From Penicillus capitatus (lineage: Eukaryota > Plantae > Chlorophyta), in assembly GCA_965649825.1 (NCBI GenBank), contig OZ287694.1, positions 495,197 through 559,196 of the forward strand: a stretch of DNA of 64,000 bases, given 5' to 3'. The position numbers and the translations under genes are program-made. Positions 1,277-41,000 of the stretch are shown one piece after another (position 1 is the first letter of the stretch; every line of letters begins with the position of its first letter). Below the pieces are notes generated by a model. It was not told the DNA's origin and did not search any database. It saw only the letters and a list, made by a program, of their open reading frames with translations.

Positions 1277-3769
1277 TCAAAAGCCAGTCATGGCGAGTTT
1301 CACGATGGCGTGGGTCTCTTCTTCAGTCTGCACGACTCCGTGAAAAGGCAGGTGTGATGCGGAGAGATCGATCGCACTTGTATGCCATTCTTCTGCGTTT
1401 GGAGTTCTTTGTTCATGTCCATGGCGCCCTTGGGAAGATCCGTCTGAAACCATCGATGTTCCATGATTCCTTCCATGTCGATGCGTTGGGTTGGATCCTT
1501 GTCCAATATCTTGTGCAGCAGGTCGCTCAGATCGGCAGAGATGGCGGGATGATCAGGGATCGTTAACGGCGCTTCTGCAATTCTCTGGCGATGAACAGGA
1601 TCGATAGCAGAGACAAAGAATGAGGTGACTGCTCACTGTCATCATTCGTTGCGGTTTGTCTTGCCGATCGAGACTTCTTTTTTCGGTGTTATCAAAGGGA
1701 TACGATGCAAAAATCATGGTGTAAAGAAAGAATCCACACAACCAAATGTCCGCTTTCTGAAGCGACACGCAGACACACGTCATCTTCGGGATGTCGAGCA
1801 ATGGAACGGGTACTTTGCTGTCATACGTCTGTCCTTGCCTTGTTGCGAAGATGGCCTCTGGTGCCATGTAGGCAGGCGTGCCCACTCTCGGATGCGTCGA
1901 TCCACACATATCGTTCTGTGCAGAACGGAATGTCGAAAAAAAGCTTAGATGACAAGACAGACACGGCTTACCTGGCTATACCTAAAGCCACAGATTTTGA
2001 GGAGAGGCCATTGGCCACTACTCAGCAGAGCATGTTCAAGCTTGATATCATGACTTGTCACTCCCAGTTGATGGCAGTAATCTAAACTGATGATAAGCTG
2101 CTGAAAAAACCAGCGTGTCTGATTCTCGTTGAGTCCGTCTTTCTTCTTAACCAGATCCAACAGATCGCCACCCGGAGCGTACTCCGTGACGATGCATAAG
2201 TGTCGGGGCGTCAAGTATACCTAGAAGTTTATCACACATCGCAATTTAGCAATGCTGTAGAGAATTTGCGACAACTGAACAACCTCTTCAAACTGGATCA
2301 CGTGATGATGAAGTAAGTTTCGATGGTTCATAATCCCTTGCAACACATGCTCGTCGATCTGTCATCACAGTTCGACATTGGCGGAGTCTTTCGCCGGATG
2401 CATGTGCTTTACTTTTTTCCCGCGTTCGATGCACTTGACGGCATACTGCTCTCCTGTGCATTTGTTTTGAGCCAAGTGGACGGAGCCGAAGTCTCCGGAG
2501 CAAATGTCTTTGACCTGCCGTTGCGTCGAAAGCACTTCATCGGCAACACATTCCTTTGCTGTTTGCTTGCCTTCTTGTAGTATCTCTCATTTCTGAGAGG
2601 CGGTGCGTCCATGAGCTGTGAAGAGGGCTGCGGTGGTAGATACTCGACGGCTTCTTGGTCTCCTTCTCGCTTGTCCCTCTCCTCCTCCTTGCAAATACGC
2701 AACATCAATGGCATGCGACAGAGAAATGGATGCAGACAGAAGCGGCGGGGTCATCTGCACGTGCATGCTGACTGTGCGCTTCGTTCAATTCATCCCCAAG
2801 AGGGTGTCCATTTTCTGTCTCGGTCTCGCAATTCTCCGACCCGTCGATTCTGACTGGGAAACTCACAAGAGTCTTGGCCGACGAACTGGTAATCGGCTCT
2901 CCCGATGTGATTTCGGTTTTGGTCACCGGGTCCTTCTCATGTCCGCGTCGCAGCCGCTCCTCAATGCTGGCCCTCTCACAAGTGACACCCGAGTCTTTCA
3001 GCACGACTGTGTCCCTCTTGACCTCCTTGCTGTTGGGACAACAACAGAGCTGATCAAGAAGACCGGCAGACAAATCTGAAGATGGTGCTTTTTCTTTCTG
3101 CTCAAATGACTCGTAAATGGCATCGATGATATGCTTCAGCTCATACTCCAGCAGCTGGTCTTTTTCTCTTCGCGCCTCGCGCATGTACTCCTTCAGCACA
3201 GCCAAGTCCTGCAACTTGGCTTCGACTGTTCTGGAATGCTCTTTCATCATGTCAACGAGGATTGTCTTCATCTCCTCTGTCCCTTCCAGATTCCTGTTGA
3301 ATGCCTTCTCCATTTCGTCCTTCCACACCCTCGTCTGATGCGTCGATGCCGCCACGCTGTCGAACTTGGCTTGGCGAAGATTGTCTTGGAGGGCGAGAAT
3401 GGATTGGCGCATTTCTTCCGTAATCGGCAGACTGGCCAAAAGCAGCTGTTGCAGCACGTGTTCCAGCTTCTGTGCTACGTGCTTCAGCTTCTCGTTGTTC
3501 CGCGAATCGAACAACGTCCCTGTCAAACGTGTGGACTTGCAACAGTCTTCTATGGCTTGGTCGGCTGCATTAAACGCGTGGAGCATGAGGTCCAGCGCTG
3601 CGAGCAGTGAGGGGTCATCCACGTGAAGCTGCTCCAGTGTCTGCAGAAACGGCTTCGTTTGTTCCGCCAAAGAGGCGAGCAGTTTGCACTCTTCGGCATT
3701 CATAACGGCGAGTGCTGCACGGTCGGCGATGCCTTCGGTCACCTTTAGGACCACGCTTATGACATCCAT
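1277..3769 (-). CDS. MLKL-NTD/UND-like helical bundle + coiled coil + degenerate U-box + SnRK2-like pseudokinase (copy 1, multi-exon)
   Basis: ORF 3769-2705 is joined in frame through a GT-AG intron (2737-2688), a 117-nt exon and a GC-AG intron (2570-2515) to the kinase exons: VKDICSGDFGSVHLAQ..YAVKCIERGKK|IDEHVLQGIMNHRNLLHHHVIQFEE|VYLTPRHLCIVTEYAPGG..RWFFQQLI..HDIKLEHALL..LLKICGFRYSQ|..GTPAYMAPE. Stop is TGA at 1279-1277. Exon phases match copy 2. Confidence 0.85.
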
Positions 3770-18656: not shown

Positions 18657-19330
18657 CTATGCTCGTAAGATCATAAGTCGCCAGTTCCGCAGCGCATGGA
18701 AAACGTTTGGCTTTCTTGGAACTTTTGAGTTTCTTTGAGCAGGCTTTCTTAAGTTCTGCTTGCACTGAAATGCAGCCTGTCGTTTCTCCCTTGGTGCACC
18801 GAAGCGTTGTACTCTTTCCTTCCATAAGGGAGAGATACTTTGGAGGAGAGTGTTAATTGCAACGATAAGATCTTGAAGTTGACTCTCAATATTCTGGGCC
18901 GCAACTTGGAGAGCATTGTTTTCCTTTCGAAGTTTTTTAATGCCGTCTTCAATGCCTTTTAATGCCAGTAACTTTGCTTGCGGGTTCGCCGTTCTACTTA
19001 GTGCATCTTTTGCACTTTCGACTGTCTTATCTGCGTCAGAGACAATATCCGAGCTTCCTTCCTGATAAACCGTCGAGAGTCTATTGTCAACCTCGACGGA
19101 ACCTTAACCTCTCTCTGTTATAATGTAGCGTACGATAAAGACGCACTTAACAAATGATTCTTACCTCGGTTGCCTATTTCTCTTGCTACTGCAAAAATTC
19201 GGTATGTGATTTGACCGAGTCTAAACCCTTTTGCAGCTCCAAGCCACTTATCCATAAGGGCCCAAAGTTCGCGACACTTCAAAATATCGTCTGTCAGTTC
19301 GGCGATATCATCACGCGCTTTGCTTCCCAT
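18657..19330 (-). CDS. Hypothetical coiled-coil protein, tandem duplicate of 11460-12133
   Basis: Identical sequence at +7197. Confidence 0.6.
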
Positions 19331-21603: not shown

Positions 21604-23803
21604 ATCCCACTAAATCAAAACTCGTCGAAAAAACAAATACAGTTATGTTGTTACTGCGATCACGATGCACGTCATCGCATTCACTCCGACCCAAGTTTAT
21701 GATTCATTAGCGTAACAGAACCTTAGTTTACAATGTCGAGACGGTTTGAACAATTCATAGCATTCAATCGGCGAAGCGCGAGCCACCGCACAAAGAAGTG
21801 TCATTTACATCAGGAAATTTCATTGAACGGATGAAAGAAAACGCACAGGTTTATGATCCGACACCCTACGAAAAGATGTACTGGACCAAAGTAAGGTTTA
21901 GGCCTCTACGACATGAACACACTCGGATCAACAATGCCATCTCTTCCGTGCTCTCTACCGCAGAGATAGAGAGTGTGCAACAGACATTGCGATCCCGAGC
22001 TTGTTTATCGCTCACTGGATGACATGAGGCTGTTCGCGTAGAGATAAAAACAGAACATCTCCCCTGTATTGTAAGAGTATCAATTTACGCCAACTTGGAT
22101 CGATTGGTCAAGGATAGAGAACCTGCAAGATGATGCAAACAATCCTTAGAAGCAGAAAGGCAAAGGATGATTTCTCCATTCATCGACTCTAATTGGCTGA
22201 GAAATATCGCGAGCATGAAATGTAGTGATGCGATGAATTGCCATTCTCACCTAAAGAGGTGGTAACCTCTTTTGGAGAAAACAGAGAGAGGTCGTGCATC
22301 CCTGACATTCAGTTCTCCTTTGATGTGACAGGCCGCGTCGATCTGCCTAGCGAAGGACACGACGAAGGTCACATCCGAACAGCAGCATCGCACAGCCAGT
22401 ATAACATCTGCTGTCCTGGCATCTTGCTTTACGAGGTACTGAATCCACGAGCACAAGGATAGATAGTGGGATCGCCCTCGATGATAACAGGTATGCCAAG
22501 ATGATCTGGGGGTCCCTCTTGTTCACTGATTAGATAGACACGACGATGCTCGAAGCCATGAGTGGTCTGAGGATATCGAGACGTCTTCCTTGGCAGGCAA
22601 ACAAGTCAATCGTGCAAAGCGAGAGCCCAACGTCTTACGTTCCGTCATCTGCATCAGCAGAATCGACGGTGTACCGACAGTTTGTTCGTTCAGCGTTACG
22701 GTTCAGACGAACTTCGTTCTTGGACACGGTCGCCCACGAGCGACGTGCACGCTAAGACAAGAACAGCACCTGGACTATAGTCAAGATTGATGCGTTGCAT
22801 CGTCGTCAACCCATCGCGGCTGCTGAAAAGATTTTCCATGCAACACATCGTTCGACATGCAAGACAGAATAAAAGAATAACCGAAAGGGCAGGAAAGACG
22901 AGTACGAACGGTAGGGTTAAGTCTCAAGCCGATGCTCTTATCCTCCGTTTGTTTTCTGACTCGTCATACAGGACTGCCCAGAACACAGCCCGTTATCTCT
23001 TCATTGATTGCTTGCTATCTGACTAAAAAGTAGGACCAGTCTGTGTGTGATCAAGGCAACCATTTTGCTACCGTCAGAACGGCGACATTCTATTCAGATG
23101 CAGAGCTAGATGAGTTGAGTTGTTTTAGATGTCTAGTCAAATGGGTCATTCTAGGCGGCGATCGGTTGACTGTACGAAATCTGAGCGCTGGTGACAGTGT
23201 TACGCATTTTCCGATGCCATGATCATTCTGCGCAACGGAAAGTGCACCAGAAGCAAATGGTACGGCGAAGGATGTTGATAGATTGCGTTGTTGAACAACG
23301 GCCTTGTCAGTTCGGTTATGCTTCGGTAGTAAGTTGCACTCACTTAAGTTAGGAAAGGAACAAAGTCGGCAAACTCCTTCTGCGGCTGGGAAACAAGTCA
23401 TCAAGAAACCTTACCATCTAATACCAATCATACCAAAGACCGTATGAAAAGGCAGTGTGAAATGCCCTACAAGGATACACTTTTAGTGTCGACATGTAAC
23501 ATGGTCAATTGGATGGACTGATATAGGCATCGTTCTCTACAATAACGCCAACGCATAAACGCACCTCGGAGACTTTCAGAAGTATATACCGAATTCTTGT
23601 TCTTGGTTATCTGTTTCTTTCTCATTGCGTTTTGTGAAAAAATACAAGAGTCGGATCGATGGCCGATCGCAGACTTGGCGTAAGGAAGGTACAATGCGCA
23701 CGTCAGAAGTGTGAGCATGAATGGTGAATTCTCCGCTCGCGGATCAATAATCCATCCAGAGTGAACAGAAGTGAAAGACGTCTGGCTCGGCAGATATACA
23801 ACG

Positions 23804-25553
23804 AAGAGCTGGAAGCCCACGATAGTCGAATACGAGTTAACACGATCCATTGTGTCACATGACAAATACTGTCACGGGAAGACGCTCTGGCATAACATGC
23901 GTCTGGCCCCATTCCTGCCAGACGACACTGGTATTCAGCATCCCGATAGAGGTTTTAGCAATGCTTCGTCGTGTCCAAGAGATATCCGACAGAAGCCTTA
24001 CGATGGTTAGCAGCGTGTGTGGCTGTATGGAATCGCGGTCGTGGCGATGCGTGGCAAACCGTCGTACGAATAAATCGTCTGGCGACCATTGATTCGTGTC
24101 TTTTGTGTTCGTCTGCTTTGTTCCTCTCCGACTGAGCTGCAAACCACTGCGACTTGTGTGCGGACCACCTTCCTGTTGTTCGTGCGTTGGTTCGGCGACG
24201 CAGTACACGTCCTTCAAACCGATCGCAGAAGGCGGAACTCGAACGCAGTCGGAGGTTTGTCGACGGAGGTCGTCTGTTGTTTTCCGCAGTGATCCGACCC
24301 GCCCGGAGAGAACGACGACGGGCAGTGGAACCACGAGCGCGGAGGACGACGTGTACTGCGAAGTTTGCGTCCGAAGAAAAGCAAACTCCCAACCGACGCG
24401 TCAGAAACCGACGGGTCGTGCGTCGACTCTCCATGCAAGTAGGCTCTCCTGCGACCGCGCATCGTCTAAGCACGTTTGTTTCTTCAAGGAGGCTCTGAGG
24501 CCAATAGATTCCCGAGAGATTGCGATACCGCCCAACGAACAAGGCGAAAAGGGTACCATCACCGCGCACAACATCCTCAGGCGAAAAGGGCACCATTACA
24601 GTTTCCCTGCCAGCGGCGCCCTCGGGAAATCCACGTGAGCCGAGTTAGCCATCACATCCAGGGGTCAACGCATGGGCGTGTGTTTCAGATGCAGCTGTCA
24701 CCTGGTGGTGGCACCTGGCCGAGGCAGCTCTGCGGTGGGATAGGCGGAGTATGCGTGGACGTGGCGTCGTTCTGAAGCGCTGGGCCCGGTCCAAGCCCCT
24801 CGCGTTCGGATCTGTCGCCGGTACCTTGAAGGATGCTGGCTTTGGAGGCCCCCACTCAGGACCCGCGTTTCCCTTTTTTCTGTAAGGGTCTCTTGTTAGA
24901 GTCTTTTCTTTCGTCCTGAGTGGGTTTTTCATTTCGCCGTGTTAGCCAGTAGTTTTTTAGTACTTTGTTAGACCCTGCTCTTTCTGTTCTCCTTTCTGTG
25001 TTTAGTATAGAACCTTTCTTGATTGTGTTTTTTGATCACTTCACTTTTTTCTATGTGTGCTCTGGCGACCTTTCTGTCGCGTTTACTTTGTTCATGTTTA
25101 TTGTTTCCCAATTTTGTTTTTTCTCATTCCCTGTGTTTTCCTGTTTGTTGCTGTGCTGTTTGGGCTTGAGACCGGCCACCTGCCTTCTTGACTGTGTGTT
25201 TCTCTGTTCGTGTTTGACTGCATGTGTGTTTTGCTTTTTTTCTGTCCCTTCCTTGTGTGTTTTTTTATTAGCGTGCGCGCCGCCTTCGCCTCCTTAGCTG
25301 GCTCTGCAGGGGGAAAGCATGGTGAAGGTGTGGGGTGAGGCTTTGCACGGGTCGGTGTCCCTGTCGTGGATGGTGACAGAAGCGGGCCCTGCAAGCTTTC
25401 GCTACCCCCCAGGTCAGATCCCTACCTCTCTTCTCGCAACTCTACTCAATATGTGTGTCTGCCATTAGGCTGTGGGTCGGGTCGCCGTCCGCCTCCAATG
25501 GACAGCTGGCGATATACTTCACCCGAGGGCGCCGCACGGGCAGTGGAAACTAG
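23804..25553. repeat. Repeat R, copy 3 (diverged), abutting the truncated receptor pseudogene
   Basis: Multiple substitutions and indels versus copy 1 from 24237 onward. The right TIR ends at about 25553, directly against receptor coding sequence. Confidence 0.9.
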
Positions 25554-27569
25554 GTGTTCGCTGTACGGAGACACAGTATCGAATGTCACCCGAGGACGAC
25601 GCGTGTCAGCCGTGTCCTCCGAATGCAAACTGTGCATCCGATAACGTCATTCAGCCGAACCAAGAGTACTGGCATCCGTATCCGTGCGACGTGCACATGC
25701 AGGAATGCCTGAGCCAATCTGCGTGCGATTTTGATCGAGAGGCGCAGCTGGTCGCCATCACAAGAGATATGCACGAGTGTGATCTCAATGCGGCCACTGA
25801 AAGTGCCTATGCTGAAGAACAATGCAATGAGGTCTCGTTTTCCTTCTCCTAACCCCTTTTCTCCTATCTCTCGTGAAGCAGGGATACAGAGGACCGCTTT
25901 GTGGTGAATGCAGAAGTGGATACGGTCATACGTCTTCTTTGGACTGCGACCGATGCGACAAGGACCTGAGCATTGCCTACCTAGTTCTCTCTGTTGTCGT
26001 CGTCTTGGCACCCAGCAGCTTCGCCATCAAGAGTAGTCTGGGACCAGCTCTATCAAGTGGACAAGACATCGCGCGACTCCTTCGCCAAGTGCCAGCACGC
26101 AAGCTGATCAGGACCGTTTCTGTTCCGGAAGAACTCCAGTTGGCAGAACTCGGTGGTCCGTCAAGCAGAGTCGTCTCATCAAGGCGCCAGGCGACCGAGA
26201 TCGCAGGCAGTCATGGAAGCGACGAAGATAGCCAACTGTCAGCCGAACTGGCCAAATGGAAACTCGTTGAGATCTTTAAGGTACATACAGCGTCAGATGC
26301 GGCTCCGTAAAGAATCTCTTGTTTCCAGATCACGATCAATTCTTTGCAGACGATTTCGGTGGCGATATACATCAGCTCCAACTGGACATCCTCGGCAAAG
26401 TCGCTGATATCGGCAACAGGTAAGCCGCCATCGTCCCGCTTTCGGATAAGGGACAGACTGTTCGATGGATAGATGTTGTTGGAGGCATGATGTTGAACAC
26501 GGCGTCCTTTTCCATCGAATGTCTCATTCCGCTGGAGGCCGCCTTCCCCCGGTCCATCCTTCGCCCGATCGTCGCCATAGCCGTTCCAGTTGCCGCTCTC
26601 CTCCTGCACGGCGTTTTCTGGTTCTGCGTGGGGATGAGATCCGCAGAGAGCTGGGAGTATTTGGAGAAGAGGTGGTCATTGAGCTTCCTTGCAGTTTCCT
26701 ACCTGAGCTGTGTCTGGATCACCAAAAACGCCGTGAATGTGCTTTCCTGCGTCCGAGTGCGCCAATCCATCCACACAGGCGCAGAAAGCACGAGCTATCG
26801 CTGGACACAGGCAACCACCGTCAAGTGTTTCGCAGGATACCATGCCATCCTTGTCGGTGTCCTTGGCCTTCCCGTCCTCCTTTTCTTCACGCTCTGATTC
26901 CCAGTGCTGTTGTCGTGGAAGCTGCTGAGAAAGAGAAACCGCGATTCCTCGCACGAGAGCTGGTTTATGGATGCCACAGCGTTTCTGTATCGGGCTTACG
27001 CCGACAGGTTTGTCTATTGGGAATCCCTTGTCCTGTTCCGAAAAGCGCCGTTGACGATCGTCGTGGCATTTGGATACCATCTAGGATCGAACCTCCAAGC
27101 CATCCTTGCCGTCTGCATACTGACCACGGCACTGTACCTGCACACGATGTGTCATCCCTTCCGAAACGAATTTGCCAGTCTGAATGTGTATGAAGAGGCC
27201 GTTCTCTTTTTCTCGAACATTACCTTTGTCATGGCTCTCTTATTCAATGACGATCAGATCGGGAATGCTCTGAGGGTATTGCTGTCGGTTTTGTTTTTTC
27301 TGTCGATCTGTGGACTGTTGGCTTTCTTGGGCTTTGTCTTTTCTCGGGCAACCTTTGCCTATATGTGTGTCGTACTGGGAATAGAAGAGGTTCCACAGAT
27401 CGATGCGCTTGGCAATTTGCGAGTGATGCGCGAGTTCATGATCTTTAAAGTGGCGCAGAATGTCCCTCGCATGAGAAGCTTCATTCGTAAATCCAAAGCC
27501 GATGAGGAGCAAACAAACATTGGCCTGAACGCCAGACGAGATTCGGCGGGTTTCTCCTCAGGATTGTGA
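25554..27569 (+). pseudogene. 5'-truncated PMP-like receptor pseudogene (Cys-rich + multi-TM part only)
   Basis: Starts mid-exon at (C)VRCTETQYRMSPEDDACQPCPPNANC, then GYRGPLCGEC and TM exons paralogous to 39.3-41.3 kb. In-frame TGA at 26895-26897 where the paralog has Gly (FTL*FP vs FTVGFP). Confidence 0.85.
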
Positions 27570-28616
27570 CCGTCGCAAACGATGGCCTCGAGCCTTGTAT
27601 TCATATCACAGACGGTTGTCGCGTGTTATGAGAGATCTCTTTGAAAGAATAACACTTCTCGGACTGTTGGCTCCCTGTCATGCGAAACTGCGGTTAACGC
27701 GACGTTCAGAATAGTGTCCAAAGAGACGAAAAGGCTATATGAAGATTTCCACTTGCATACTGCTCAGCCTCGCCTTATTTCGACCGCAATCTCGCCGTTC
27801 TCCACCATCTGAGAAACGCACTTGCAGCCTTAAGTGTCTAATCCAGGTTTCTCTTCTCGCTTACGGCGCGACCTTTAGCCACTCAATCTCTGTCTGCCAT
27901 GTTTTCTGTTTGATCCTCGCACTTGTCGACATTCATGCAGTCAGTCATGGTGGCATGCAGGAACGTGATGTGGACAGCATCGGTGTGTCTGGTTTGGCAT
28001 TGTCATATCGATCAAACGTTTCCACTCTATTGTTCAATGTTTGTGCCCCGTCGGCCGACGTTAAGCCTTGCAGGTAAAACAACATCCTCCATTGCGTACT
28101 CTTTTGATGTCGGCTGAATTCTTTATCAGTTGGCTGAATGAGGCAGCGAAGCTACTGATATGAAGGAAGGAATACCGAAATGTAAACATCGTCTCTTTCC
28201 TACAGATATCCGACATCACACGCCGCATCACGTTTGCAGATCAGCTCCAATGCATGTGATCAGAGCTGAGGGTTAAGTTCAGACATTTCGGCGCTGCCCT
28301 CTGACTATCGCCGTCATGTCAATGAAGTGCGTGCATTCAGGAGAAACGACGAACGTCAGTTGCCGTCGCATGCATTCTTCGTCCATTTTTCTGTCCCAGT
28401 GAACGCGTTCGTCGAACTGCGAGATAAAAAAACATGTCCACCACAAGAATACTACCATTCACGGCTTTGCCGATCTGAAAGCTATTAGGCGGAATGCTCG
28501 ATAACGTCTTCAAAGTCGAACGCGGTGTTTCGATGCATTCGATGATCAGTACGGTCAGCGTCCGTGCGGCACATTAACATCGTCACTCTCCATCATTTTC
28601 CCTTCATTGCAGTTCG

Positions 28617-31127
28617 ATGGATGTCATAAGCATAGCCCTAAAGGTGACCGAAGGCATCGTAGACCATGCCGCACTCGCCGTAACGAACGCCGAAGAGTGC
28701 AAACTGCTCGCCTCTTTGGCGGGACAAACGAAGCCGTTTCTGCAGACACTGGAGCAGCTGCACGTGGATAATCCTTCACTGCTCGCAGCGCTGAACCTCA
28801 TCCTTAACGCACTCAATGAAGCGGACCAAGTCATAGAAGACTGTTGCAAGTCCACATGTTTGACAGGGATGTTATTCGCTTCGCGGAACAGCGATAAGCT
28901 GAAACACGTCGCTCAGAAGCTGCAACACGCGTTGCAACAGGTGCCTCTGGCCAGTCTGCCGATTGTGGGAGAGATTCATGAATGCATGCTCGCCCTCCAA
29001 GACGACCTTCACAAAGCCAAGTTCGACAGCGTAGCGGCATCGACGCTTCAGACGACAGTGTGGAAAGAAGAAATGGAGAAGGCATTCAATAGGAATCTGG
29101 AAGGGACAGAAGAGATGAAAACCGTCCTCGCTGACATTATGAAGGAGCATTCCAGAACAGTCGAAGCCAAATTGCAGAACCTTGATGTGCTGAAGGATTA
29201 CATGCACGAGGCGCGAAGAGAAAAAGACCAGCTGCTGGAGTACGAGCTGAAGCATATTATCGACGCCATCAATGAATCTCTCAAGCAGACGGAACAGGCC
29301 CCGGCTCCGGATTTGTCTGCTGATGTTCTTGATCAGCTTTGTTGTTGTCCAATCAGCAAGGAGATCATGAAGGACCCAGTGGTGCTGAAAGATTCGGGTG
29401 TCACTTATGAGAGAGCCAGCATTGAGGACTGGTTGCGACGCGGGAATAAGAAGGACCCCGTAACCGAAACTGAAATCAAATCTTACGAGCTAATTCCAAA
29501 TCTGTTGGCCAAGAGTCTTGTGAGTTTCGCAATTGCAATCGATGGATCGGAGAAACACCAAACCAAGACAGAAAAACGACAGCCTCGTGAAACTGAATTG
29601 TACGAAGGACGCGGTCAGCATACACGTGCAGAAAATGCTGCCACTTCCGTCTGCATCCATTCCGCTGTCATATATCATTGATGATGTGAATTTCAAGGTT
29701 GGGGAGAGGAGGAAGCGAGAAGGAGACCCAGTTCGCGCTGAGTATCTACCACAGTTTTTTACACCCCTCACGATAGCATCTCCGCTTGTCAGAGAAGAAA
29801 GTCGATATGAGAAGGCAAGGACGTAGTAACAAAGGCATGCAGTCGTTTGGAAGCGTATGTTGCAACGACAGGTCAGAGACATTCATCTCGGCGACTTCGC
29901 CTTCGTCCACTTGGCTCATGACCATTGCACGGGGGAGCACTGTGCTATTAAATACATTGAACGTGGGAGAAAAGTAAGGCACGTGTGTTCGGTTGAGATT
30001 CGCCAATGTCGAAGTGGGATGATAGATCGACAAGTACGTGAAGTATGGGATACTTAACCATCGAAAGTTATCTCATCGTCACGTGATTCAGTTTAAAGAG
30101 GTTGCCAAACTATTGCTACTTCATTACAGCTTCTGTAAAAGTGTGACGGGTGATTAACATTCAGGTGTATTTGACCCCCTCGTATTTGTGCATCGTCACA
30201 GAGTATGCTCCGGGTGGCAGTATGTTGGATTATGTCAAGATGAAAAATGAGTCCAGCGAGAAGGAGATGCGTTGGTTTTTTCAGCAACTTATCATCGGTG
30301 TGGACCATTGCCATCAAATGGAAGTGGTACGTCCTGAGATCAAACTCGAAGATGCTCTGCTGGATGGTGGCCGACGTCCTCTCCTCAAAATCTCCCCCTT
30401 TAGATATAATGTGGTGAGCAGTGTCGTTACTGTCACTTTATCATTTTCCGGACGTTCCCTCCTCTGCAGCAAGATGAAGACAATTTAACACCGTTACCTG
30501 GAGTGGGTACACCCGTCTACGTGGCACCAGAGGTCATCGCGCCACTACAGGCATATGATAGCAAAGTGCGCGTTCGATTGCGCGACATCCGAAGATGATG
30601 ATGTGTGGTCACGTTGTCTACAGAAAGCAAGTGTTTGGTCCTGTGGAGTTTGTCTGTACTTTATGATTTTTGCATGTTATCCCTTCAAGAACGACACGGT
30701 AAGGCACGCCATGTCCAGACAATCAGACTACCTCATTCCCTTCCTCTGCTGCTGATCCTGTGTTTTCAGTGTATTTTGGAAATGCCGTTATCGATTCCCG
30801 AACATCCCGCCATCTCTGCCGATTTGGAAGACCTGTTGCACAAGATCATGGAAAAGGATCCAGAGAAACGCATCGGTATAAAAGACATCATGGAACATCG
30901 CTGGTTTCAAACTGATCCTATAAATGTCGCCATATTCACGAACAAAGAACTCGGCAATCAAAGGGCAAAAAGTCGCTTGCAAGTAAGATCGATCTCTCCA
31001 CATCATACCTGTCTTTGATGGAGTCTTACAGAGTGAAGAAGAGGTCCGTGCTATCGTGGAAGAAGCAAAGATTCCTGCCACAGATAAAGGGCTTAGATTG
31101 GACATCGTTCACACAGTAGGGGATTAG
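28617..31127 (+). CDS. MLKL-NTD/UND-like helical bundle + coiled coil + U-box + SnRK2-like pseudokinase (copy 2, multi-exon)
   Basis: ORF 28617 has the U-box CPISKEIMKDPVVLKDSGVTYERASIEDWL..DPVT..LIPN. Introns 29649-29697 (GT-AG) and 29815-29871 (GC-AG) join it in frame to VRDIHLGDFAFVHLA..CAIKYIERGRK|IDKYVKYGILNHRKLSH..QFKE|VYLTPSYLCIVTEYAPGG..RPEIKLEDALL..LLKISPFRYN..GTPVYVAPE. Stop is TAG at 31125-31127. Confidence 0.88.
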
Positions 31128-31329
31128 ATGCACAGATACATACAAAGGGATCCGGGATTATATTTCATTCGTTTCAATTATCTGTTGCCGCACTCGCCTA
31201 ATCACTCAGTTTTGTAAAGACATCCCCACTCACTCCCTTGGACATTCAGAATTGGATCTAGCACATCCAACCCCGATTTAGACTCCGTTATATTATTGTA
31301 TTGATGAACGGCTGCAGATTTTATGAAAC

Positions 31330-31690
31330 TAGATCGAGTTCAGTGCGAAACGCGAAGGGTCTTACAAAACTAACTATGCGCCGTCATCGTAGCTGCCACA
31401 TGAGTTTCGAAAAAAGCAGACGATACCTCTTCAGATTCGAGATCAAAATATGGTATCCTGTGTTTTGACAGCAAAGACGATCTACTACCAAGGAGATAAT
31501 GCGACGGTCGACCTTTTCAAACAGACCTTCATCCAGCTCCATCTGGAAAGCAAATTCTGGAACGAGTATCCGGTTAGGAAAGCCCATCGCTCTCGCCAAA
31601 ACGCTGCGAGAATCGCCCACCCGCATCGGATTCAACGCCGTACCACATCACATCCCTGCATCCGGAGTCACTGGCATGTTCCTTGATGAA
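31330..31690 (-). pseudogene. Degraded ORF paralogous to 740-1070
   Basis: EHASDSGCRDVMWYGVESD..SQRFGESDGLS*, then a frameshift into PEFAFQMELDEGLFEK. Confidence 0.3.
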
Positions 31691-32264
31691 ACAGATCACA
31701 CAGCAGTCCAGTACCTCTATCACTCCCATTGACATTGGCCATGACGATCGGATGCACAAGATCATCTCCATGAAGTTATGACACCCATTTGCTGTCCACT
31801 CCCTAATGAGTGGGCTCTTTTATAGTCCAGTACATTGTTCTCAAACAGACAGAGATCGATGAGAAATCGTTTGCAAGGAGACCAAAGACCGGAAATCCAG
31901 CACTTTAGCATACGACCACCCCTTCTCCTATAAAAACGGCGCCCTCTCCCCGAACGTCGACTCTTGCTGGATACTGGATCTCTTGGCTGGTACCATCGTT
32001 AGCAGCAAGAGCACGTGGATAACACCATAGACTGATATTAGAGAAGTGTCTCTAAGAGTGGCGTGATCTTCACTGCTGTAAGTCGTGCGCTTGGCGGAAA
32101 AGAGTGAGATACGTGCTCTCCAGCATCTACGTACGCCGAGTGGTTTGATGCAGGTGTATGTTTGTCGTACGACTAGCGGTTTTTGATCAGACTCATTTTA
32201 TCTGCAGAACGTTTCTTTGTTCTTCGCAGCTTAGTGAATCGTGAGAATCGACACGTGCTCAAGG

Positions 32265-32960
32265 ATGGATGCAATCTGTGCGATTTTTCTGATGGTGTTC
32301 CAGGACACCTACGAAAGAGTGTTTAGCGTTAGGTGTTGTCTAGGGAATTCGCGCCGTTCTGTGTGTCACACAGACGCCTCTGGCTTCTGTATCTGCACCT
32401 GATTACGCGAGTGTCGTTACGGTCGCGTTTGAAGATGATTTCGGACTGCAAGAGGCGATAGACTCCGAAGGAGAGATAGAGATGCCTCCGGAAGCTCCTG
32501 GTTCGCTCATGACCCAAGAGTCACCAGTCGTACTTATCACAACTGCATTGTAGAAGCAATGAATTCAGAGGAAGCGCAAGAGAAGGACGAGACATATGCG
32601 GACGTCACATCCACATACTACGCCCATATCGACTTTGATGTAGCAGATGTGGAAAGTGAAGGAGAAGGAGAAGGGGAGCACGATGCCGATGTCGACGTCG
32701 CTGCAGAGGAAGTGGAAGAAGAGGAAAAGAAAACAAAGAAGAGACAGAAAAAGAAGAAACCGACGACGATTCAAGTGTCCGAACGAACCACCCAGAACAC
32801 TGTCGTGGAAAAAACTCCACAGAAATATCCAAGCACAACTCCCCCAAAGGCCACCAAGGATGAAGGAATTGATGGAGAGGGGCAACCTGTCTTGTTGGAA
32901 AGGAGTTCCAGACCTGATCCACAAGCACTTGTGTACGCAGTAGGACAGCTTGTCGGCTGA
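32265..32960 (+). CDS. Acidic secreted protein family member B (apparent 1-nt frameshift near 32547)
   Basis: MDAICAIFLM|GIRAVLC.. has a 10-codon first exon, as short as in the other members. Acidic body. C-terminus TPPKATKDEGIDGEGQPV..RPDPQALVYAVGQLVG matches member D. Confidence 0.55.
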
Positions 32961-33736
32961 ATTCCATCGAGTCGACAGAAGAGAGCGAAGGGGTCGCTGC
33001 TCAGACATGTTGTTCTCGCAATGGATAGCACATACATGAGTGGATTCTTTCTGAGGCCACTTTGTGATACATTGGGAAAGAACTGCATCGCACAATGTGA
33101 ATATCCTTGTAAAGCAAATAAACAAAGTTCTTTGGACGAAGCACAAAACGTTGAACGAAGAAGGATCACGTTCGTTAGACGACGACACTGAATAGATGAT
33201 CATGTGTTCGAAAGGACACTGCCACTCGTCGAGAGAGGAATCCTGCCAGACATGGCCCTTCGCGTGCATGATCTGCAACTACTACACTGTCCGCTCTTGA
33301 CGATGATATCTACCGATATTCCGTTTCTTAAACAACGACCACGTGTGCAACGAAGATCACCTCTTGTATCGACAAAACAATCCTGCCACAACTGTTCAGG
33401 ATGCCAGCTACGGTGGATGGCACGCAGGGTAACAGAATGCGCTGTATGCTCTTTCACATTCTCACCGCAAGCGGCACGCCAAGTATTACGGAAAAGACGG
33501 CTCTTGACGACAAAACCGGATCCCATCTGTCTATTGGGTTGCATTTCACCCCAAATCGAGTTGCTAAGGACTTTCGAACGGCGTTGCAAGAGGCGCTGCC
33601 ATTCCTGTTGTAATCGAATCGGTCGTCGAACGCTACCTTTGACAGAATCGAATCGACAGAAATCGACTGCGTAGCTCAAACGGAACTCGCGAAGGCGGAG
33701 GAGCGCAAGAACAGAAGCGACGGTTAAATAAAAATC

Positions 33737-34356
33737 CAAAAGTTTTTGTCCGGGTGGTGAGACTCCATCGTCGTCGGCCCCCGAACTCAGCGCGACGTTG
33801 TCCTTTCCCCGCCGTAACCCATCCAACTCGGCGCGGGCTCGCCGGACACAACCGGTCAACTCTGATGGGACAACCCTCCTCTGTGTCCGGCGCAGGTATC
33901 GAACCCCCGCGGTCGTACTTCTCGAACTGGTCCAACTGCACCATCCGCTTCGGGTCGATCCCCACAGTCGAGAACACGCTGTCGCCAAGGTAAGCCCGCC
34001 CGTGACGACTCTCTCGACGGCCTGTTGACGACTTTCTCCACCGATCACTCTACACCCGTGACGACTTCGCCGGCGACTCTTTGACGACTTTGTCGTCCAC
34101 CCGCCGGATGTCACTGTGGCACTCTGTGGTCGACAACACCATATGTGTCCTCACGCTATTTATTTGAGTCATGGCTGCCCATGCGACGTGTTTTGGCGTT
34201 CAGGACATCGAGATCAAGCAATGCATTCATTCTCAATTCACGTTTGCTTTAGCGCTATTCCTATTTTGTTCGTTCCGTGCCCGAGTCTGTGTTTCATTCA
34301 CTGCCATGTTTCTCCGCCGCCGGACTGATGGTGACAGTACGGAGTTCGTTTTCTGA
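33737..34356. repeat. 620-bp dispersed direct repeat, copy 2
   Basis: Matches 5328-5947 at offset 28,409. Confidence 0.95.
33738..33969 (-). ncRNA. Candidate Pol III structured ncRNA, copy 2
   Basis: Identical to 5329-5560 (A-box, B-box, 10-bp helix, TTTT). Confidence 0.4.
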
Positions 34357-35040
34357 AAGCTGTCGCTCTTTATCGAAACTCCTCGTCAGTTTATCGCATG
34401 ATCAATACCGACAACGAAGCTGATCCCTACTGAGTGTATTCTCGTCATCTCGATAGAAAGGTCGAGTACAGATGTTTCTTCTACGCTCCGACGATTGGAC
34501 TGACTGGCCTCTGGAGCCTCAAGCGGCGTTCGGGATTGGACTGTAAAAGACAGTGGTTGATCATCAGAAAGCTTTTTGTCAACGAGCTTTAGGAAAAGTT
34601 GCACCAAACGGTATCCTTCGAGACTCAATTCGGGAGATTGCTGCATCGCACAATACAAATGCTGTCTGTACATGACGAGCAAAGCTCTACGCTACAAAAC
34701 GGCAGAGGAAGACCGAACGATGCAACGGACGCGTCGAACAAACAAACCAGAGTGAGCAAGTCGTGTCGACCACTCCGCAGTACGCGAGCCGACACACAAT
34801 CGAACACAGAACGCTCAATTTCGCCAATGATAACAGCGAACATCGCGGAGAACCACACTGAGAAGTCTCTCCTGTCGTGTCGGGAAGAGAGCACTTAAAG
34901 AACGCGGCCCTCTCCATTCCGGGATTCGTTCGAGTTTTACCGAAGACCGACGCGTGTCGCGATATCGTTTTCTCGCCCACCGAGGGGACACTAAGTTCCT
35001 TTCGCGTACGTTTCGCAGAAGGCAACAACGACGCGGCAGC

Positions 35041-38000
35041 ATGGCACCTTCGAAGATGCTCTGGGCATCGCTTCTGACCATCTGTGTCGCCACGCTGTGT
35101 GCCTCGCAGCCCGACTCTCGCGCTCCCAACGTCGCGGGATCGTCTTCGAGGGCCACCACAAGGTCGACAGGTGAGCTTTGCACTGCTGCCGTCTCTTCGC
35201 GTGTAGGCTCGACTCCTTCGCCGTCTCTCCCGCTAAACGAGACCGAAATCTCACATCTCTCTCTCTGAGTCCTTCCCTTCAGGAGTAGGCGACGAGTCAG
35301 CGGCACTTCCCATGTCCACAGACAACGGCTCGAAGGAGTCCGACGATGCGAAATCCCACCACGCTGTACATCCTCGGCATCGACGGCTGCCTGCGGAATG
35401 GCGTCTTGTGTTTCCCCAGGCACCCAGATCTGTCCGTTCTCTGCAGCAAAGCCTCGAGGACGCTGGGGAAGAAGGTCTGAAACCCGCCGCGGCGGATATA
35501 CGGCCGTGACGTTGTCTTGAGCAGGTCGGTGTCAGCTGACGAGCAGCGCGATTGCGTCCATCCTCGACGTCGAAACCAGAATGTGGCTCATCGACGACCG
35601 GCATCTGGACGACATCTCACACGACCTGCAGACTCTCGTCGACTGCAGCAGCGACGGAGACACCATTCTCTTCAACACCACGCGGCCAATCACGCCTCCA
35701 AGACGCATCGAGATTCCATGGAACCTGACCCTCAGTGCCGCCGTGGACGCGATCGATCTCGAGAACGGCGTGTTTCCAAAGTCGGAGTCGCCGACGACGT
35801 TCACGTGTCCCGAAGGAGACGGCGTCTTCTCCCTAAAGTGAGGATCCCCATCGACGTGGGACAGGGCGATATCTTGCATCACCTCACTCGTCGTGTGCGT
35901 GCAGGACGGGTACAGCCCTAATCGCAAACATCGTCTTCAAGAACTGCACCCTGGACGAACAGGACAGGGCCATCGTGCAGCTGGAGGAATGCACCTCGAA
36001 GGAAGCGAGCGGGACCGTCCGCCTTCACCGCGTGGCGTTTCGCGGACATCGACTGAACGGCACGAGCTCCTTCTCCTCTGGCGCCGAGTGCGCGTCGGTG
36101 GAGATGATCCGCGTCAAGTTCTCTGACAACTCCTGTGGGGACGCATGCTTCGCGCAGCTGGCCGCCGCCGCCGACCTGAGACACGTCCGTCTCGAACGAA
36201 ACGTGCCTGTAGCGAGTCTGGACACAAGACGTCCCGTCTCGCTGCTGCGTCTGCTCGCTGGATCGACGACTAAGGTCGTCGACATCCATCTCAGCCAGAA
36301 TGCCGTCGCAGGGGTCCACGTCAGCGATGGGACGTTGAACCTGACACAGTCGACCTTCGAGCGCAACTCCGAGGGTCCGACGGTCCGTTTGGACCAGGGC
36401 AGTCGAGCACACATTGCCGACTGCGTGTTCCGAGGGAACGAGGCGTCGATTCAGAGAGCGGAAGAGACGCTGCCCGAGTCGCTGCTCGCCTTCGAGAGCA
36501 GCGGGTTCAGATGCGTGCCCGTCACGATGACGCGGGGAAGTGCTCTCTTGTCGTTCGACAGCGACGTCAGAGTGAAGGGCTGCGAGTTTAGGCAAAACAA
36601 GGTGCACGGAGACGCCAGCGGAGTCTTCGCATCGGGCGGCACTCTGGAAGTCGACGCGTGCAGCTTCAGAGACAACTCCGCGACTAAGGCCGGAGGCGCC
36701 GTCTATCTGCTCAACGCTCTGGCTCTGTTCGATAACGTCGTCTGCGTCGATAACAGCGCCGAAGACGGCGGTGGATGTCTCTTCGCTGAGAACGCCACTG
36801 GCTGGATCGTCGACTCGCGTCTGAAAGGCAATTCGGCTTCAAAGGGAGGCGCTCTCTGCATCAAGGAGTCCGCCGAGTTGCAGATCCAGAACAGCTCCTT
36901 CGTCGGCAATAGCGCTGAGGAGAGCGGCGGGGGAGCCCACGTCCAGGCCGAGCTCTGTCGCTTCGTCGAATGCCGGTTCGAGAGGAACAAGGCAAGGACG
37001 GGAGGCGGCCTGAACGTCGACAAAGACAGTGCCGTCCGCATCGAGCGCTCCACCTTCGTTCAGAACAATGCGTCCGATTCTGGCGGCGGCATGTCGAGCG
37101 AGAGAAGCGTCGTGGAACTGGAGGCCATCGAGCTGACAGGCAACCGCGCAAGCAGTCAGGGCGGAGCCGTCCGGGTGAAGGAAGAATCGACGATCCGTGT
37201 TCGGGATTCGCAGTTCCGGGAGAACAGTGCCGGGATATACGGCGGGGCGATGGTGGTGCAGAACAGCAAGGGGACGCTCTCCGGATGCGAGGTCGAGAGG
37301 AACGTGGCGGACATCGGCGGAGGAATCGAGCTGTCGCGCACGTCCTCCCTCGAGATCCGAAACAACTCCGAATTCGTCGAAAACCGAGCGAGAAATGGAG
37401 TGGGCGGCGGAATCGACTGTCAAGGCCGAAGCGAGTTGAAAATCTCGGACGCCGAATTTCGGGACAACAATGCATCGCGTCAAGGAGGGGCCATCTTCCT
37501 GTACGCGTCCTCTCTAAACGCGGCGCGTCTGGTGATTCTGGATAACGTCTGCGGTGATATGGGCGCTGGGGTGTTTCTCTACGGCAAGAGCACGGCGGAG
37601 TTCTCTGACTCGCTTTTCCAGCAAAATCGAGCAGAGTACGGAGGGGCAGTCTTTGTGCGCGAGTCGCAGGTACACGTGCGTGGCAGCAAGTTTTTTGATT
37701 GTCGAGCAGAGAAGAATGGAGGCGGCATCTATATCGAATCCCAATCCGTTGTCGTTTTCGAAGGCTCTGCTTCAGAGTTTTTGTGGAACATCGCCGCAGG
37801 GGGCGAGGGCGGCGGCGTGTACTGCTCGGATGGAAACCTGACGGGAGAATCGCTGAGCTTCGTGAAGAACTATGCTGCCGACGGAGGCGGGATCGCGATG
37901 AACATGGAATGCGAGGCAACGCTGTCTCTTGTGAACTTCAGAGCGAACAATGCCTCTCGTGGCGGAGGCCTCTACGTCACAGGAGGGTCCAGAGTGGACC

Positions 38001-41000
38001 TGCGCAGCGGGTCGTTCGAAGACAGCCAGACTTCCGAGATGGGGGCCGCCATCCACGTCGAGCTTTCCTCTCTTAAGCTTCGCGGCGCCACGTTCCTGAA
38101 CGGAACCTCCCAGACAGGCGGATTCGTCACGTGTCGGGGAGCCAACGTGAAGATCAGGAATTCGCAGGCGGACATCGGCCTGGCGAGTGAAACTGGAGGA
38201 TTCATGGACGCAAGCGAGAGCAGCAACGTCTCCATCGCCAACCTGTCCCTCAGCGGCATGCGTGCCAGAACAGGCGGCGCATTTCACCTTGCAGCGTCCA
38301 ACCTGCGTGCCAGAGGGCTTAGCGTGAACGGATCCTCGGCGGAGGAATCGGGTGGCGGGATTCACGCAGATCAAGGGTCGTCTATTCTCTGCCTCAAATG
38401 CGCCTTCGAGGGGAACGCAGCTGGCCGTTCCGGAGGCGGCGTCTCGATCGCATCCGCAGAACCGCAGCAGCTGGTCTACCAGTTCGACGGGTGTCACTTC
38501 AGCAACAACAGCGCCACACTCGGAGGTGCGTCGATCCTGCAGCTCTGGGAGGAACGGATTGAGAGTGTTGCGGTGTAGGTGGGATTCACTACCTGAGCAA
38601 TCACACGGCACCGGACTGTGGCAGACCGGAGGCTAACTGCACCCTGGTCACCCTGGGCGGCGTTGTGCTCAAGAACAACAGTGCCGAGTGCGGCGGCGGC
38701 ATCTTCACGAGCGACCCGACAGCGTTCAGATTCCGCTGCCCGGAACATCACGAACGAGACGAGCTGGGGTTTTATAGCGAAAGGGAGCTGGATGGAATGC
38801 GCGTTCTCAGATCCGATAAAGACCTCTGCGCCGACGCATGGTCCGGCAACACGGAGATCAACTTTGGTCCCGACGTCGCCACCTACGCCCGTCGCATCCT
38901 GTGGTTCATAGAGGACGGGAGTGGACCTGAGGCGGAGACGATCCAGATAGAGGAAACCCGCAAACGCATCGACTACAAGAGCGGCGAGCCGCTTCCGAAG
39001 ATCCGCCTCGAGGTGGTCGACGCGTTTGGCCAAGGACCTGCCTTCGGAGCGGGCAATGCCACGGTGGCGGCTGTGATGTGGTCTCCCTCGACGGACCCGT
39101 CCAAGAGCAATGCGCTCTTTCCGGGCAACGTCAGTCTGCTCATGGTGGACGGCACCGCAGAGTTTTCCGAGATCCGCGGCCTCCAGACGCCGAACGACTG
39201 CCTCGTGCGGATCGACTTCAGCGAAGACGCGCTGCCGACTCTGGAGATCGACGTGACCGTCCGGGATTGCATCATAGGCGAGGCGCCGAACAACGATCGG
39301 ACCCTCTGCGTCCCGTGCTCCCAGAGACAGTGCAGGGTGTCGAAGAAAGACGACCAGTGTCAGCCGTGCCCCGAGAATGCAAACTGCTCGTCCATAAACG
39401 TCATCCAACCCGACAGAAAGTACTGGCACCGCCATCCGTGCTCGGTGCACATGCAGGAGTGCCTGAGCCGAACGGCGTGCGACTTCGATCGCGAGGAGGG
39501 ACTAACGACTGTCACGGCAGAGATGCAGGACTGCACATTCAGCCAAATGATGGATGAGGATTACAGCCAGACGCAATGCCGAGAGGTGCCGTGCCTTCTC
39601 CCGTCGTCCTCTGCGCACTCTGACTGCTTTTTTTCAGGGCTACACCGGGCTGTTGTGTGGAGACTGCGAGGCTGGATACGGTCACAGTTCTTCGTTCGAC
39701 TGCGATCGATGCGACACGGGTCTCAGCATCACGACCCTGGCGATCTCCATCTTGCTGGTGCTGGCTCTCAGCAGCTTTGCCATCCGAAGCAGTCTGATCC
39801 CGGTGCAGAATCCTCGACGCGACGCTAGAGCCAGTCGTCGAAGGATGTCGCGACGCTTTATCGGGGTAGCAACCTCGGCTCCAGCCAGCATCCAGCTGGC
39901 GCCACTCGTCTCGCGCGGCAACCCTCCACCGAGATCGAGGCACACGCAGAACGAAGCGAGCCAGGAGGACGAGGGCGAGAGCTCGGCCGTGATGGCCAAG
40001 TGGAGAACGGTCGAGATCTTCAAGGTGAGGCTCTGCGAGTGCGTTCTCACGATCACCTCTGGCATTTGCAGATCACCATCAATTTTCTGCAAGTGATGTC
40101 GGTGGCGATCTACATCAACGCGAACTGGACGTCGTCGTCGACATCCCTCATCTCAGCAACAGGTCACGCCTCTCAGCGCTCTTCCGCAGGGAGTGCTCAC
40201 GATTCGTGTGGATCTCAGACGCGGTCGGCGGCATGATGTCGGGAAGGGCGTCTTTCTCTGCCGAGTGTCTCGCGCCGGCGAACGCAGTCGTCGCACGGCC
40301 GGTCATTCGAGCCATCATCAGCTTCGCCATTCCCGTCGTCGCCGTTCTCCTCTACGGCATCTTCTGGCTGTGCATGGCGTGCAGATCCGCCGAGGGCTGG
40401 CACTACTTCAAGAAGAGATGGCTGCTGAGCGTCGTCGCCGTCGCCTACCTCACCTACGTCTGGATCACGAAGACCGCCGCCAACACCCTCTACTGCATTA
40501 GAGTGCACGATTCCGTCGACGTGGACGTCGACACCATGCATCGCTACTGGTCGCAGGACACATCTTTGCGCTGCTACAGAGGCCCCCACGCCGTTCTCGC
40601 CTTCACACTGGGCTGGCCGGTGATCGTGGCCTTCACGGTCGGATTCCCCGCCTTCCTGTACTACAATCTGCGCAACAGTCGCAGCTCCGATGGCCGACCG
40701 GCGGCCGTCTTCATGGAGATCGCCGCCTTTCTGTACCGAGCCTACTCGGACGACTTCAGATACTGGGAGCTGGTCATCATGTGTCGCAAGGCGCTGCTCA
40801 CCGTCGTCGCTGTGTTCGGCTACCATCTCGGATTCAATCTCCAGGCCGTTCTCGCCGTGTGCGTTCTGACGACGGCGCTCTATCTCCACATCAGTGCCCG
40901 TCCCTTCAGAAAGGAGTTTGACGCACTGAACGCCTACGAAGGGGCATCTCTGTTCGTCTCCAACATCACCTTCGTTTTGGCGCTCCTCTACGACGACAAT

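Follow-up and report, generated by a model that had tools for sequence, protein, structure and literature searches.

Several described protein families share parts with the locus reported here. In plant U-box ligases of the PUB10/12/13 type, a helical bundle (the UND) precedes the U-box, and ARM repeats follow it. Other plant PUBs (PUB32-35, PUB50-53) join a U-box to a kinase that is RLCK-like and usually active, with the USP and kinase domains N-terminal to the U-box and with no MLKL_N-type bundle. In MLKL, a two-helix brace couples the N-terminal bundle directly to a TKL/RIPK-like pseudokinase. Independent MLKL_NTD-kinase fusions have arisen in grasses and plant fusions act in immunity (PMC11297308). 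The SnRK2 kinases (OST1/SRK2E; algal SNRK2/SAC3, the "sulfur stress regulator") occur as stand-alone proteins. Here we describe two paralogous genes, copies A and B, in a 64,000-nt stretch of contig OZ287694.1 of the green alga Penicillus capitatus (the window, meaning the whole stretch analyzed), whose predicted products join an MLKL_N/UND-type bundle, a presumed coiled coil, a U-box, and a degenerate SnRK2-type kinase domain (Table 1).

Like the plant PUBs, A and B place a helical bundle ahead of the U-box; however, neither copy has a Pfam match to ARM repeats, a dead SnRK2 would be the C-terminal recognition domain, a single helix of ∼90 residues stands between bundle and U-box, and the closest family of the two copies is limited to green algae related to Caulerpa. 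PUB32-35 and PUB50-53 also combine a U-box with a kinase fold in a single chain, in reversed order. The likeness to MLKL includes, besides the bundle itself, a C-terminal pseudokinase with the VAIK Lys retained and helical segments after the bundle, whereas the kinase of A and B is of SnRK2 (CAMK-like) origin, and in place of the brace a helix (residues 118-133), a second helix of ∼89-90 residues, the U-box, and a disordered linker of 73 residues separate bundle and kinase. Membrane activity is a trait of MLKL, whereas A and B are known here from genes and models; the kinase of wheat Pm13 is active, whereas that of A and B is predicted not to be. With the SnRK2s, A and B share exon boundaries and the SnRK2 box, but the alphaC Glu, the catalytic-loop Asn, the DFG Asp, and domain II are lost, part of alphaG is deleted in A, and the domain sits behind a ligase. 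With the bundle-coiled-coil-U-box family of Bryopsidales, they share a ∼230-aa N-terminal module, the U-box, and a LYEGxGQ motif, and they lack the ∼280-aa domain common in that family. The combination of bundle, U-box, and SnRK2-type pseudokinase appeared in no annotated proteome or literature that we searched, in agreement with an earlier note on this DNA which had taken it to be undescribed, and, among the loci and gene models examined, the SnRK2-type version was found in four only (A, B, and the metagenome loci L001 and L005).

The explanation we favor, to which we give about an even chance, is that A and B encode PUB-like E3 ligases of an algal family that use a dead SnRK2 as a binding or sensor module. 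As judged from sequence comparison, the bundle-coiled-coil-U-box unit of this family is a chassis carrying a variable C-terminal domain, namely the ∼280-aa domain, ankyrin repeats, ankyrin repeats plus a TKL-type pseudokinase, or SnRK2.

Hand-built gene models with GT/GC...AG joins gave, for each copy, a spliced coding sequence of 2055 nt encoding 684 aa, with 9 exons and 8 introns, every intron being in phase 0 and 49-71 nt long overall (50-63 nt for the eight introns of copy B). Exon 1 of copy A is an open frame of 344 codons, exon 2 measures 117 nt in both copies, and the remaining 7 pieces, which lie in changing frames, match an SnRK2 kinase in consecutive order. Seven of the introns end in GT-AG and one, intron 2, in GC-AG in both A and B (donors GCAAGG and GCAAGC). 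The introns within the kinase are demanded by SnRK2 homology, e.g., RYEK|VRDI against RYELVKDI of OST1. Loci L001 and L005 have the same nine-exon frame, phases, and GC donor; the exon lengths of the four copies differ by multiples of 3 only, and none of the copies contains a stop, against 30 and 35 stops in the other two frames of the copy A coding sequence. The two copies are 66% identical as proteins (global alignment) and form an inverted duplicate (1695-4277 vs 30685-28101) of 77% nucleotide identity. The earlier note had proposed one spliced reading frame in both paralogs, with equal intron phases and a 117-nt exon, and our models reproduce its coordinates and junctions. We take A and B to be real genes of a green alga, paralogous to each other and interrupted by introns. 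A bacterial or contaminant origin was rejected, as the kinase can be restored only with spliceosomal introns and every homologue belongs to Viridiplantae.

Table 1. Features of copies A and B with their positions in the window.
Feature	Position	Strand	Basis
Copy A, whole gene: bundle, coiled coil, U-box, linker, SnRK2-type pseudokinase, SnRK2 box	28617..31127	+	
Copy A, exons 1-5	28617-29648, 29698-29814, 29872-29973, 30026-30100, 30165-30413	+	
Copy A, exons 6-9	30470-30565, 30624-30698, 30770-30982, 31032-31127	+	
A residues 1-133, MLKL_N/PUB10_N-type four-helix bundle and first helix after it	28617..29015	+	Pfam, profile, AlphaFold, Foldseek
A residues 138-227, single long helix, presumed coiled coil	29028..29297	+	AlphaFold2 helix 138-226
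A residues 243-306, U-box, consensus intact (CPI, DPV, TYER, I..W, LIPN)	29343..29534	+	Pfam
A residues 327-344, last 18 codons of exon 1 (ELYEGRGQHTRAENAATS), putative stump of the usual C-terminal domain	29595..29648	+	Alignment, P0014-P0024
A intron 1, putative ligase-kinase fusion junction, GT-AG, 49 nt	29649..29697	+	Sequence logic
A exon 2, 117 nt, putative former N-terminal leader of the captured SnRK2, ends RYEK	29698..29814	+	Alignment to leader of intact algal SnRK2 P0025
A intron 2, GC-AG, kept in 4/4 copies	29815-29871	+	
A exons 3-8, degenerate SnRK2-type kinase domain	29872..30982	+	PDB SRK2E 2e-68, motif alignment
A VAIK Lys, retained	29950-29952	+	
A alphaC Glu -> Gly	30047-30049	+	
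A catalytic loop RPEIKLED	30330-30353	+	
A DFG -> PFR	30396-30404	+	
A exon 9, SnRK2 box (SEEEVRAIVEEAKIP) and stop codon	31032..31127	+	Alignments
Copy B, whole gene: 9 exons, architecture as copy A	3769..1277	-	
Copy B, exons 1-5	3769-2738, 2687-2571, 2514-2413, 2358-2284, 2220-1972	-	
Copy B, exons 6-9	1915-1814, 1756-1637, 1584-1378, 1327-1277	-	
B U-box, degenerate: CPI->CPN, KDPV->RDTV, TYER->TCER, W->R, LIPN->PITS	2852..3043	-	Pfam, alignment
B exons 3-8, pseudokinase; G-loop SGDFGSV, Lys kept, alphaC Glu -> Gly	1378..2514	-	

From our Pfam analysis, the N-terminal region of copy A scored 19.7-21.5 bits with MLKL_N and 19.5-20.8 bits with PUB10_N, which are under the respective cut-offs of 27 and 32.6 bits; the Caulerpa relatives P0219 and P0220, however, exceeded the MLKL_N cut-off, and PUB10_N matches were present in 17/19 family members (best 2.2e-8). 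A profile built on residues 1-232 of 14 family members had MLKL N-terminal domains as its only PDB matches (E 1.3e-4 to 2.2e-4, with residues 7-111 aligned to 8-115). AlphaFold2, run on copy A with a 19-sequence alignment, predicted residues 1-226 with predicted local distance difference test (pLDDT) values of 85-95, the helices being 3-19, 25-48, 53-78, 81-107, 118-133, and then 138-226. The MLKL N-domain 2msv was the top Foldseek match of the AlphaFold model in the PDB (E 6.5e-3, probability 1.0, target-normalized TM score 0.65). Among 70 relatives found with the N-terminal profile, domain matches were to MLKL_N in 33, MCAfunc in 27, PUB10_N in 11, and RPW8 in 8. Because the Pfam, PDB-profile, AlphaFold/Foldseek, and relatives' matches agree, the bundle is taken, on sequence and model, to be a genuine member of the MLKL_N/UND superfamily. 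The coiled coil that follows is the best conserved segment (dN/dS 0.14-0.30; all dN/dS values here are Nei-Gojobori estimates).

The U-box of copy A matched Pfam at 6.5e-16 (58.7 bits) and that of copy B at 2.5e-5 (24.8 bits). In a profile search of the PDB, PUB U-boxes of rice and Arabidopsis (PUB12/OsCIE1 best) and that of CHIP were retrieved at 1e-16 to 1e-11, and the domain has pLDDT 88-94 in the full-length model of copy A. The domain is intact in A, L001, and L005; in copy B, five hallmark residues in total are altered, and the change to CPN affects the E2-contact Ile. The dN/dS of the U-box was 0.07-0.18 without B and 0.39-0.45 in comparisons with B.

The C-terminal half matched Pfam Pkinase at 1e-41 (A) and 1e-51 (B), with SRK2E/OST1 as the best PDB match (2e-68), CIPK and AMPK at ∼1e-35, and 42-46% identity to intact algal SnRK2. 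Compared with the intact algal SnRK2s P0025, P0076, and P0078, none of the four copies (A, B, L001, and L005) retains the alphaC Glu, the catalytic-loop Asn, or the DFG Asp: the Glu is replaced by Gly in A, B, and L001, the Asn by Asp in A and by His in B and L001, and DFG reads PFR, GFR, GFK, or PLE among the four. The catalytic Asp is also gone in A (RPE) and L005 and kept in B and L001, copy B having the catalytic loop SHDIKLEH and GFR at DFG; in L005 the Gly-rich loop and the Lys are missing as well. None of the proteins has the acidic SnRK2 domain II at its C-terminus; they end 10-30 residues past the SnRK2 box. The substrate-binding segment GTPxYxAPE is intact in A, B, and L001, and in the full-length model of copy A the kinase (pLDDT 87-96) and the bundle (85-93) are predicted with confidence, whereas residues 301-373 are disordered (73 residues, pLDDT 25-34) and no confident packing of the domains is predicted (predicted template-modeling score 0.48). 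The domain is clearly SnRK2-derived by its matches and, from these substitutions, is predicted to be catalytically dead. Two observations stand beside this. The intact SnRK2 P0025 (Logan SRR20820735) is closest to Trebouxiophyceae and maybe comes from another organism in the sample. The protein P0027 of [Myrmecia] bisecta (KAK9815300.1, 824 aa) begins with a TIR-like region and NB-ARC and continues with an SnRK2-like domain that has neither Gly-rich loop nor VAIK region and shows DFS and NRDLSLEN at the motifs; by its sequence this further green-algal protein is NLR-like and has a degenerate SnRK2 integrated into it.

Most domain assignments of the earlier note were borne out by these searches. 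The MLKL-NTD/UND bundle it had claimed is the fold that both the PDB profile and Foldseek pick, and the comparison with the MLKL four-helix bundle that it had proposed yielded a modeled bundle with 2msv as its best match; the E2-binding consensus of its U-box is present in copy A; and a domain search of the kind it suggested returned significant U-box and Pkinase matches in A, with MLKL_N and PUB10_N sub-threshold. Its SnRK2 assignment and its motif readings (RPE/SHD, Asp/His, PFR/GFR, Lys kept) were accurate, except that it counted the loss of HRD as degeneration: the letters are right, but N/S-R-D is the normal reading of canonical algal SnRK2s, and absence of the His is therefore no sign of decay.

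Related loci were taken from metaMDBG contigs of ENA ERZ25074695 and ERZ26696514 and from Logan SRR20820735, L001 and L005 being from one ENA metagenome. Homologues of exon 1 were few and on metagenome contigs. From the full-protein search, most relatives are single open reading frames (ORFs) of 616-794 aa which share the N-terminal half and have a different C-terminal domain of ∼280 aa; this domain starts with GLYEGxGQHKxADG / PGLYEGxG, is rich in conserved Trp and Gly, occurs in P0014-P0024 and in Caulerpa P0194 and P0204-P0210, and had no match in Pfam or PDB sequences. At least 10 paralogs with this domain are present in the window's organism, and identity to paralogs over exon 1 is 45-87%. 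Exon 1 of copy B, as that of A, ends in a ELYEGRGQHTRAENAATS-type stump, and the LYEGxGQ junction motif is also found in Caulerpa relatives. An exhaustive profile search of 1.84 billion representatives gave 129 proteins with E<=1e-3, of which 36 had E<=1e-30; the N-terminal ∼230-aa module matches the family at E 1e-31 to 1e-113, its nearest named relatives being from Caulerpa lentillifera and farther ones from Mesostigma, Chara (a PUB), and Ginkgo, and 9/70 scanned relatives have ARM repeats. A scan of JGI metagenomes with the N-terminal profile found no relative. The Caulerpa members (g2326, g5391, g5364, and g5121) carry the bundle, coiled coil, and U-box, then ankyrin repeats or the ∼280-aa domain. 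In the 1550-aa g5121 (P0224), ankyrin repeats are followed by a TKL-type kinase-like domain with HRDLN and DFG -> NFE, which makes a second, independent pairing of the ligase chassis with a probable pseudokinase.

The SnRK2-type domain was found by tblastn in A, B, L001, and L005 only, and in neither the Caulerpa gene models nor L002, L003, L004, and L006, while most other metagenome relatives are ORF calls from which a spliced downstream kinase would escape. Two exon lengths, 75 nt and 249 nt (=102+54+93), correspond to those conserved among SnRK2 genes of land plants (75, 102, 54, 93, 93, 105, and 99 bp; PMC5433004), with boundaries at homologous residues. Because of this match, the SnRK2 appears to have been acquired as genomic DNA with its introns, two of which were later lost. 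The earlier note had suggested an independently assembled MLKL-like switch with an E3 ligase module as well; instead, the bundle-coiled-coil-U-box part belongs to an older family with a swappable C-terminus, and a brace is missing.

With respect to the related loci themselves, L007 is 100% identical to window 25276-39681 (14.4 kb) and L008 98.3% to window 1-13784, by which the window's alga appears to be present in ERZ25074695 as several haplotypes or strains. The flanks of L001 are colinear with those of copy A (86-90%); nevertheless, we did not accept L001 as the positional allele of A, as it lies 95 kb from the B equivalent on a 1.84-Mb contig and in another relative orientation, and we treated it as a paralog or rearranged haplotype. 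L003 (Logan SRR20820735, 6.4 kb), from a different organism, has two tandem family members of 347 and 627 aa which are 44-45% identical to A and without a kinase. In L006 (ERZ26696514 ctg296184, 46.6 kb), P0019 adjoins a long-terminal-repeat retrotransposon polyprotein (RVT_1, RNase H, and integrase); the contig is flagged circular, which is probably a repeat-induced artefact.

The four copies diverged at dS 0.4-0.6. The kinase dN/dS among A, B, and L001 was 0.35-0.44 with dN < dS (Z 4.5-5.3), and that of the bundle was 0.22-0.45; the kinase domain has been kept under moderate constraint since the divergence of the copies. The pseudokinase state, being common to all copies, predates this divergence. 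The copies are mosaics: dS between A and L001 is 0.09 in the U-box but 0.56 in the bundle, while B and L001 share 86-91% identity over their kinase exons; such mosaic identities point to gene conversion.

According to the explanation we favor, the usual C-terminal domain would have been cut after its first ∼18 residues in this lineage, and a complete SnRK2 gene, its own introns included, would have been joined on via a new intron, after which the captured kinase would have lost its phosphotransfer residues and been retained as a folded domain. The coiled coil may oligomerize the protein, the U-box would recruit an E2, and the dead SnRK2 would bring SnRK2 partners to the ligase or report the state of a partner; candidates are PP2C-type phosphatases, upstream Raf-like kinases, substrates, and active SnRK2s. 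The bundle may have a regulatory or localizing role, as the UND of plant PUBs. Copy B, without the U-box consensus, might act only as a partner or regulator via its conserved bundle and coiled coil, or it might be decaying. The ligase activity of A and the binding role of the pseudokinase are thus predictions that we infer from the sequences. Several points weigh against this explanation. The splicing of intron 1, which would make the fusion, was inferred by sequence logic; the partners of the pseudokinase are candidates only, and the role of the bundle in plant PUBs is itself poorly defined. Against L005, the kinase dN/dS was 0.67-0.77 and not significantly <1 (Z 1.5), which indicates relaxed selection, and the kinase exons are barely above the introns in nucleotide conservation. 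L009, which is 97% identical to L001, has no kinase exons: where L001 has 2.4 kb with exons 3-9, L009 has 1.9 kb of unrelated sequence that includes a (REEEDRRR)n frame (L009 6156-8041 vs L001 7156-9590). Because of this presence/absence variation, the kinase module seems dispensable in some genomes.

An expressed fusion would be unique in our searches as an SnRK2-derived pseudokinase, and also as a protein with an MLKL_N-type bundle, a U-box, and an SnRK2-built kinase fold. Wiring of a dead SnRK2 to a ligase would suggest that in chlorophytes, which are not known to have the land-plant abscisic acid receptor module, the partners of SnRK2 are under ubiquitin control. The family could serve as a natural experiment on the role of the UND/MLKL_N bundle in plant U-box ligases, and it bears on whether the ligase and executioner functions of the bundle fold are linked. 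Its origin by capture of an intron-bearing gene would still be visible in the stump of the old domain and in a vestigial start codon.

The protein could instead be an MLKL-like decoy-executioner, which we consider unlikely though worth weighing: the dead SnRK2 would be a bait or sensor, the action of an upstream kinase or pathogen effector on it would free the bundle, and the bundle would oligomerize via the coiled coil and act on membranes (as a pore or Ca2+ channel), the U-box tuning the protein's own level or signaling. That the bundle appears to be a true MLKL_N homologue, with PDB sequence and structure matches and relatives passing the Pfam cut-off, and that the VAIK Lys is retained as in MLKL would fit this, as would an immune-gene-like family (many paralogs, clusters, mosaic gene conversion, swapped C-termini, and kinase presence/absence), the independent Caulerpa relative with bundle, U-box, ankyrin, and TKL pseudokinase, and the trebouxiophyte P0027, where TIR-like and NB-ARC domains are joined to a truncated SnRK2-like domain; plant MLKL_NTD-kinase fusions also act in immunity, as cited above. 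However, the brace is missing, the U-box and disordered linker intervene with no predicted packing, and the same kind of bundle (PUB10_N matches in 17/19 members of the algal family) fronts the U-box in ordinary plant PUBs, which are not known executioners. Further, the MLKL_NTD of wheat Pm13 alone caused no death (PMC11297308), and the tightest constraint is on the coiled coil and U-box, not on the bundle. Carried further, siphonous green algae would have independently built an MLKL-like immune or wound device, in which an SnRK2 decoy or sensor frees the bundle and self-ubiquitination by the U-box sets the threshold; we regard this as a long shot. If true, the variable C-terminal domains would be a sensor repertoire on one executioner chassis, comparable to NLRs with integrated domains.

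It is also quite unlikely, in our estimate, that the locus holds two cistrons, with exon 1 as a complete 354-aa bundle-U-box gene and the SnRK2-like gene translated separately, from a bicistronic or its own transcript. When left unspliced, the exon-1 frame runs into a stop inside intron 1 (10 codons past the donor in A, 10-12 across the 4/4 copies), and an in-frame ATG lies 9-42 nt 5' of exon 2 in B, L001, and L005 (MLRICK, MMCIKK, MMCIQK...), partly overlapping the exon-1 stop, which together with the logical choice of intron 1 leaves room for this model; we read this ATG as a probable vestige of the start codon of the captured SnRK2 gene. In copy A, however, no in-frame ATG precedes exon 2 (ATGATGTGA being in another frame), although the kinase frame of this copy stays intact through 8 exons; the gap of 49-77 nt is too short for a promoter, and intron 1 is a GT-AG intron of 49-54 nt in three copies, like the other seven introns. 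Leaky scanning or reinitiation, moreover, would work poorly past an upstream ORF of 354 codons and many internal ATGs, which counts against separate translation. Still less probable is that A and B are decaying chimeric duplicates, products of an accidental juxtaposition whose kinase half (and the U-box of B) is drifting to a pseudogene. A stepwise catalytic loss (A worse than B and L001, L005 worst), the relaxed kinase of L005, the degenerate U-box of B, the deletion in L009, the similar intron and exon identities, and a region rich in recent segmental duplications would all agree with decay; but there are 0 stops or frameshifts in 9 exons x 4 copies at the observed dS, the indels are all in frame against 30-35 stops elsewhere, dN is significantly < dS in A, B, and L001, the splice sites including the GC donor are kept in every copy, and the kinase core is predicted to fold. 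Finally, we give very little credence to an atypical active kinase with relocated residues, as in WNK or CASK, which would phosphorylate and ubiquitinate the same targets: the catalytic Asp and VAIK Lys of B and L001 and the GTPxYxAPE segment of A, B, and L001 are there to support it, but every copy has jointly lost three separate essentials, namely alphaC Glu, Mg-binding Asn, and DFG Asp, and A is also without the catalytic Asp.

In the remainder of the window, Pfam matches in ten long ORFs were to Beta_helix/PMP and RPE65 only. A tandem duplication occupies 9424-25550, with a unit of ∼7.2 kb at 99% identity (9424-18371 vs 16621-25550) and a partial third copy; its repeated ORFs of 246 and 271 aa have no Pfam match. 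A segmental duplicate of 93% identity (6121-10461 vs 59671-64000) has RPE65/carotenoid-oxygenase-like fragments (ORF 6370-7395, minus strand, Pfam 2.8e-13). Rfam gave no match in the window at gathering thresholds, and ARAGORN found a tRNA-Leu(CAA) of 99 nt at 53522-53620 (minus strand), the sole RNA gene found in the window. Very large right-handed beta-helix / Chlamydia-PMP-repeat proteins are encoded at 48284-53320 (minus strand) and 35975-38578 (plus strand), one being 1678 aa with internal repeats 70-83% identical and one lying in a 61% GC stretch. Such beta-helix genes adjoin bundle-U-box genes in the window and in L001 (1-2226), L002 (11646-13146), L004 (10801-12855), and L009 (1-1185), an adjacency which could reflect either a co-duplicated block or two expanded families.

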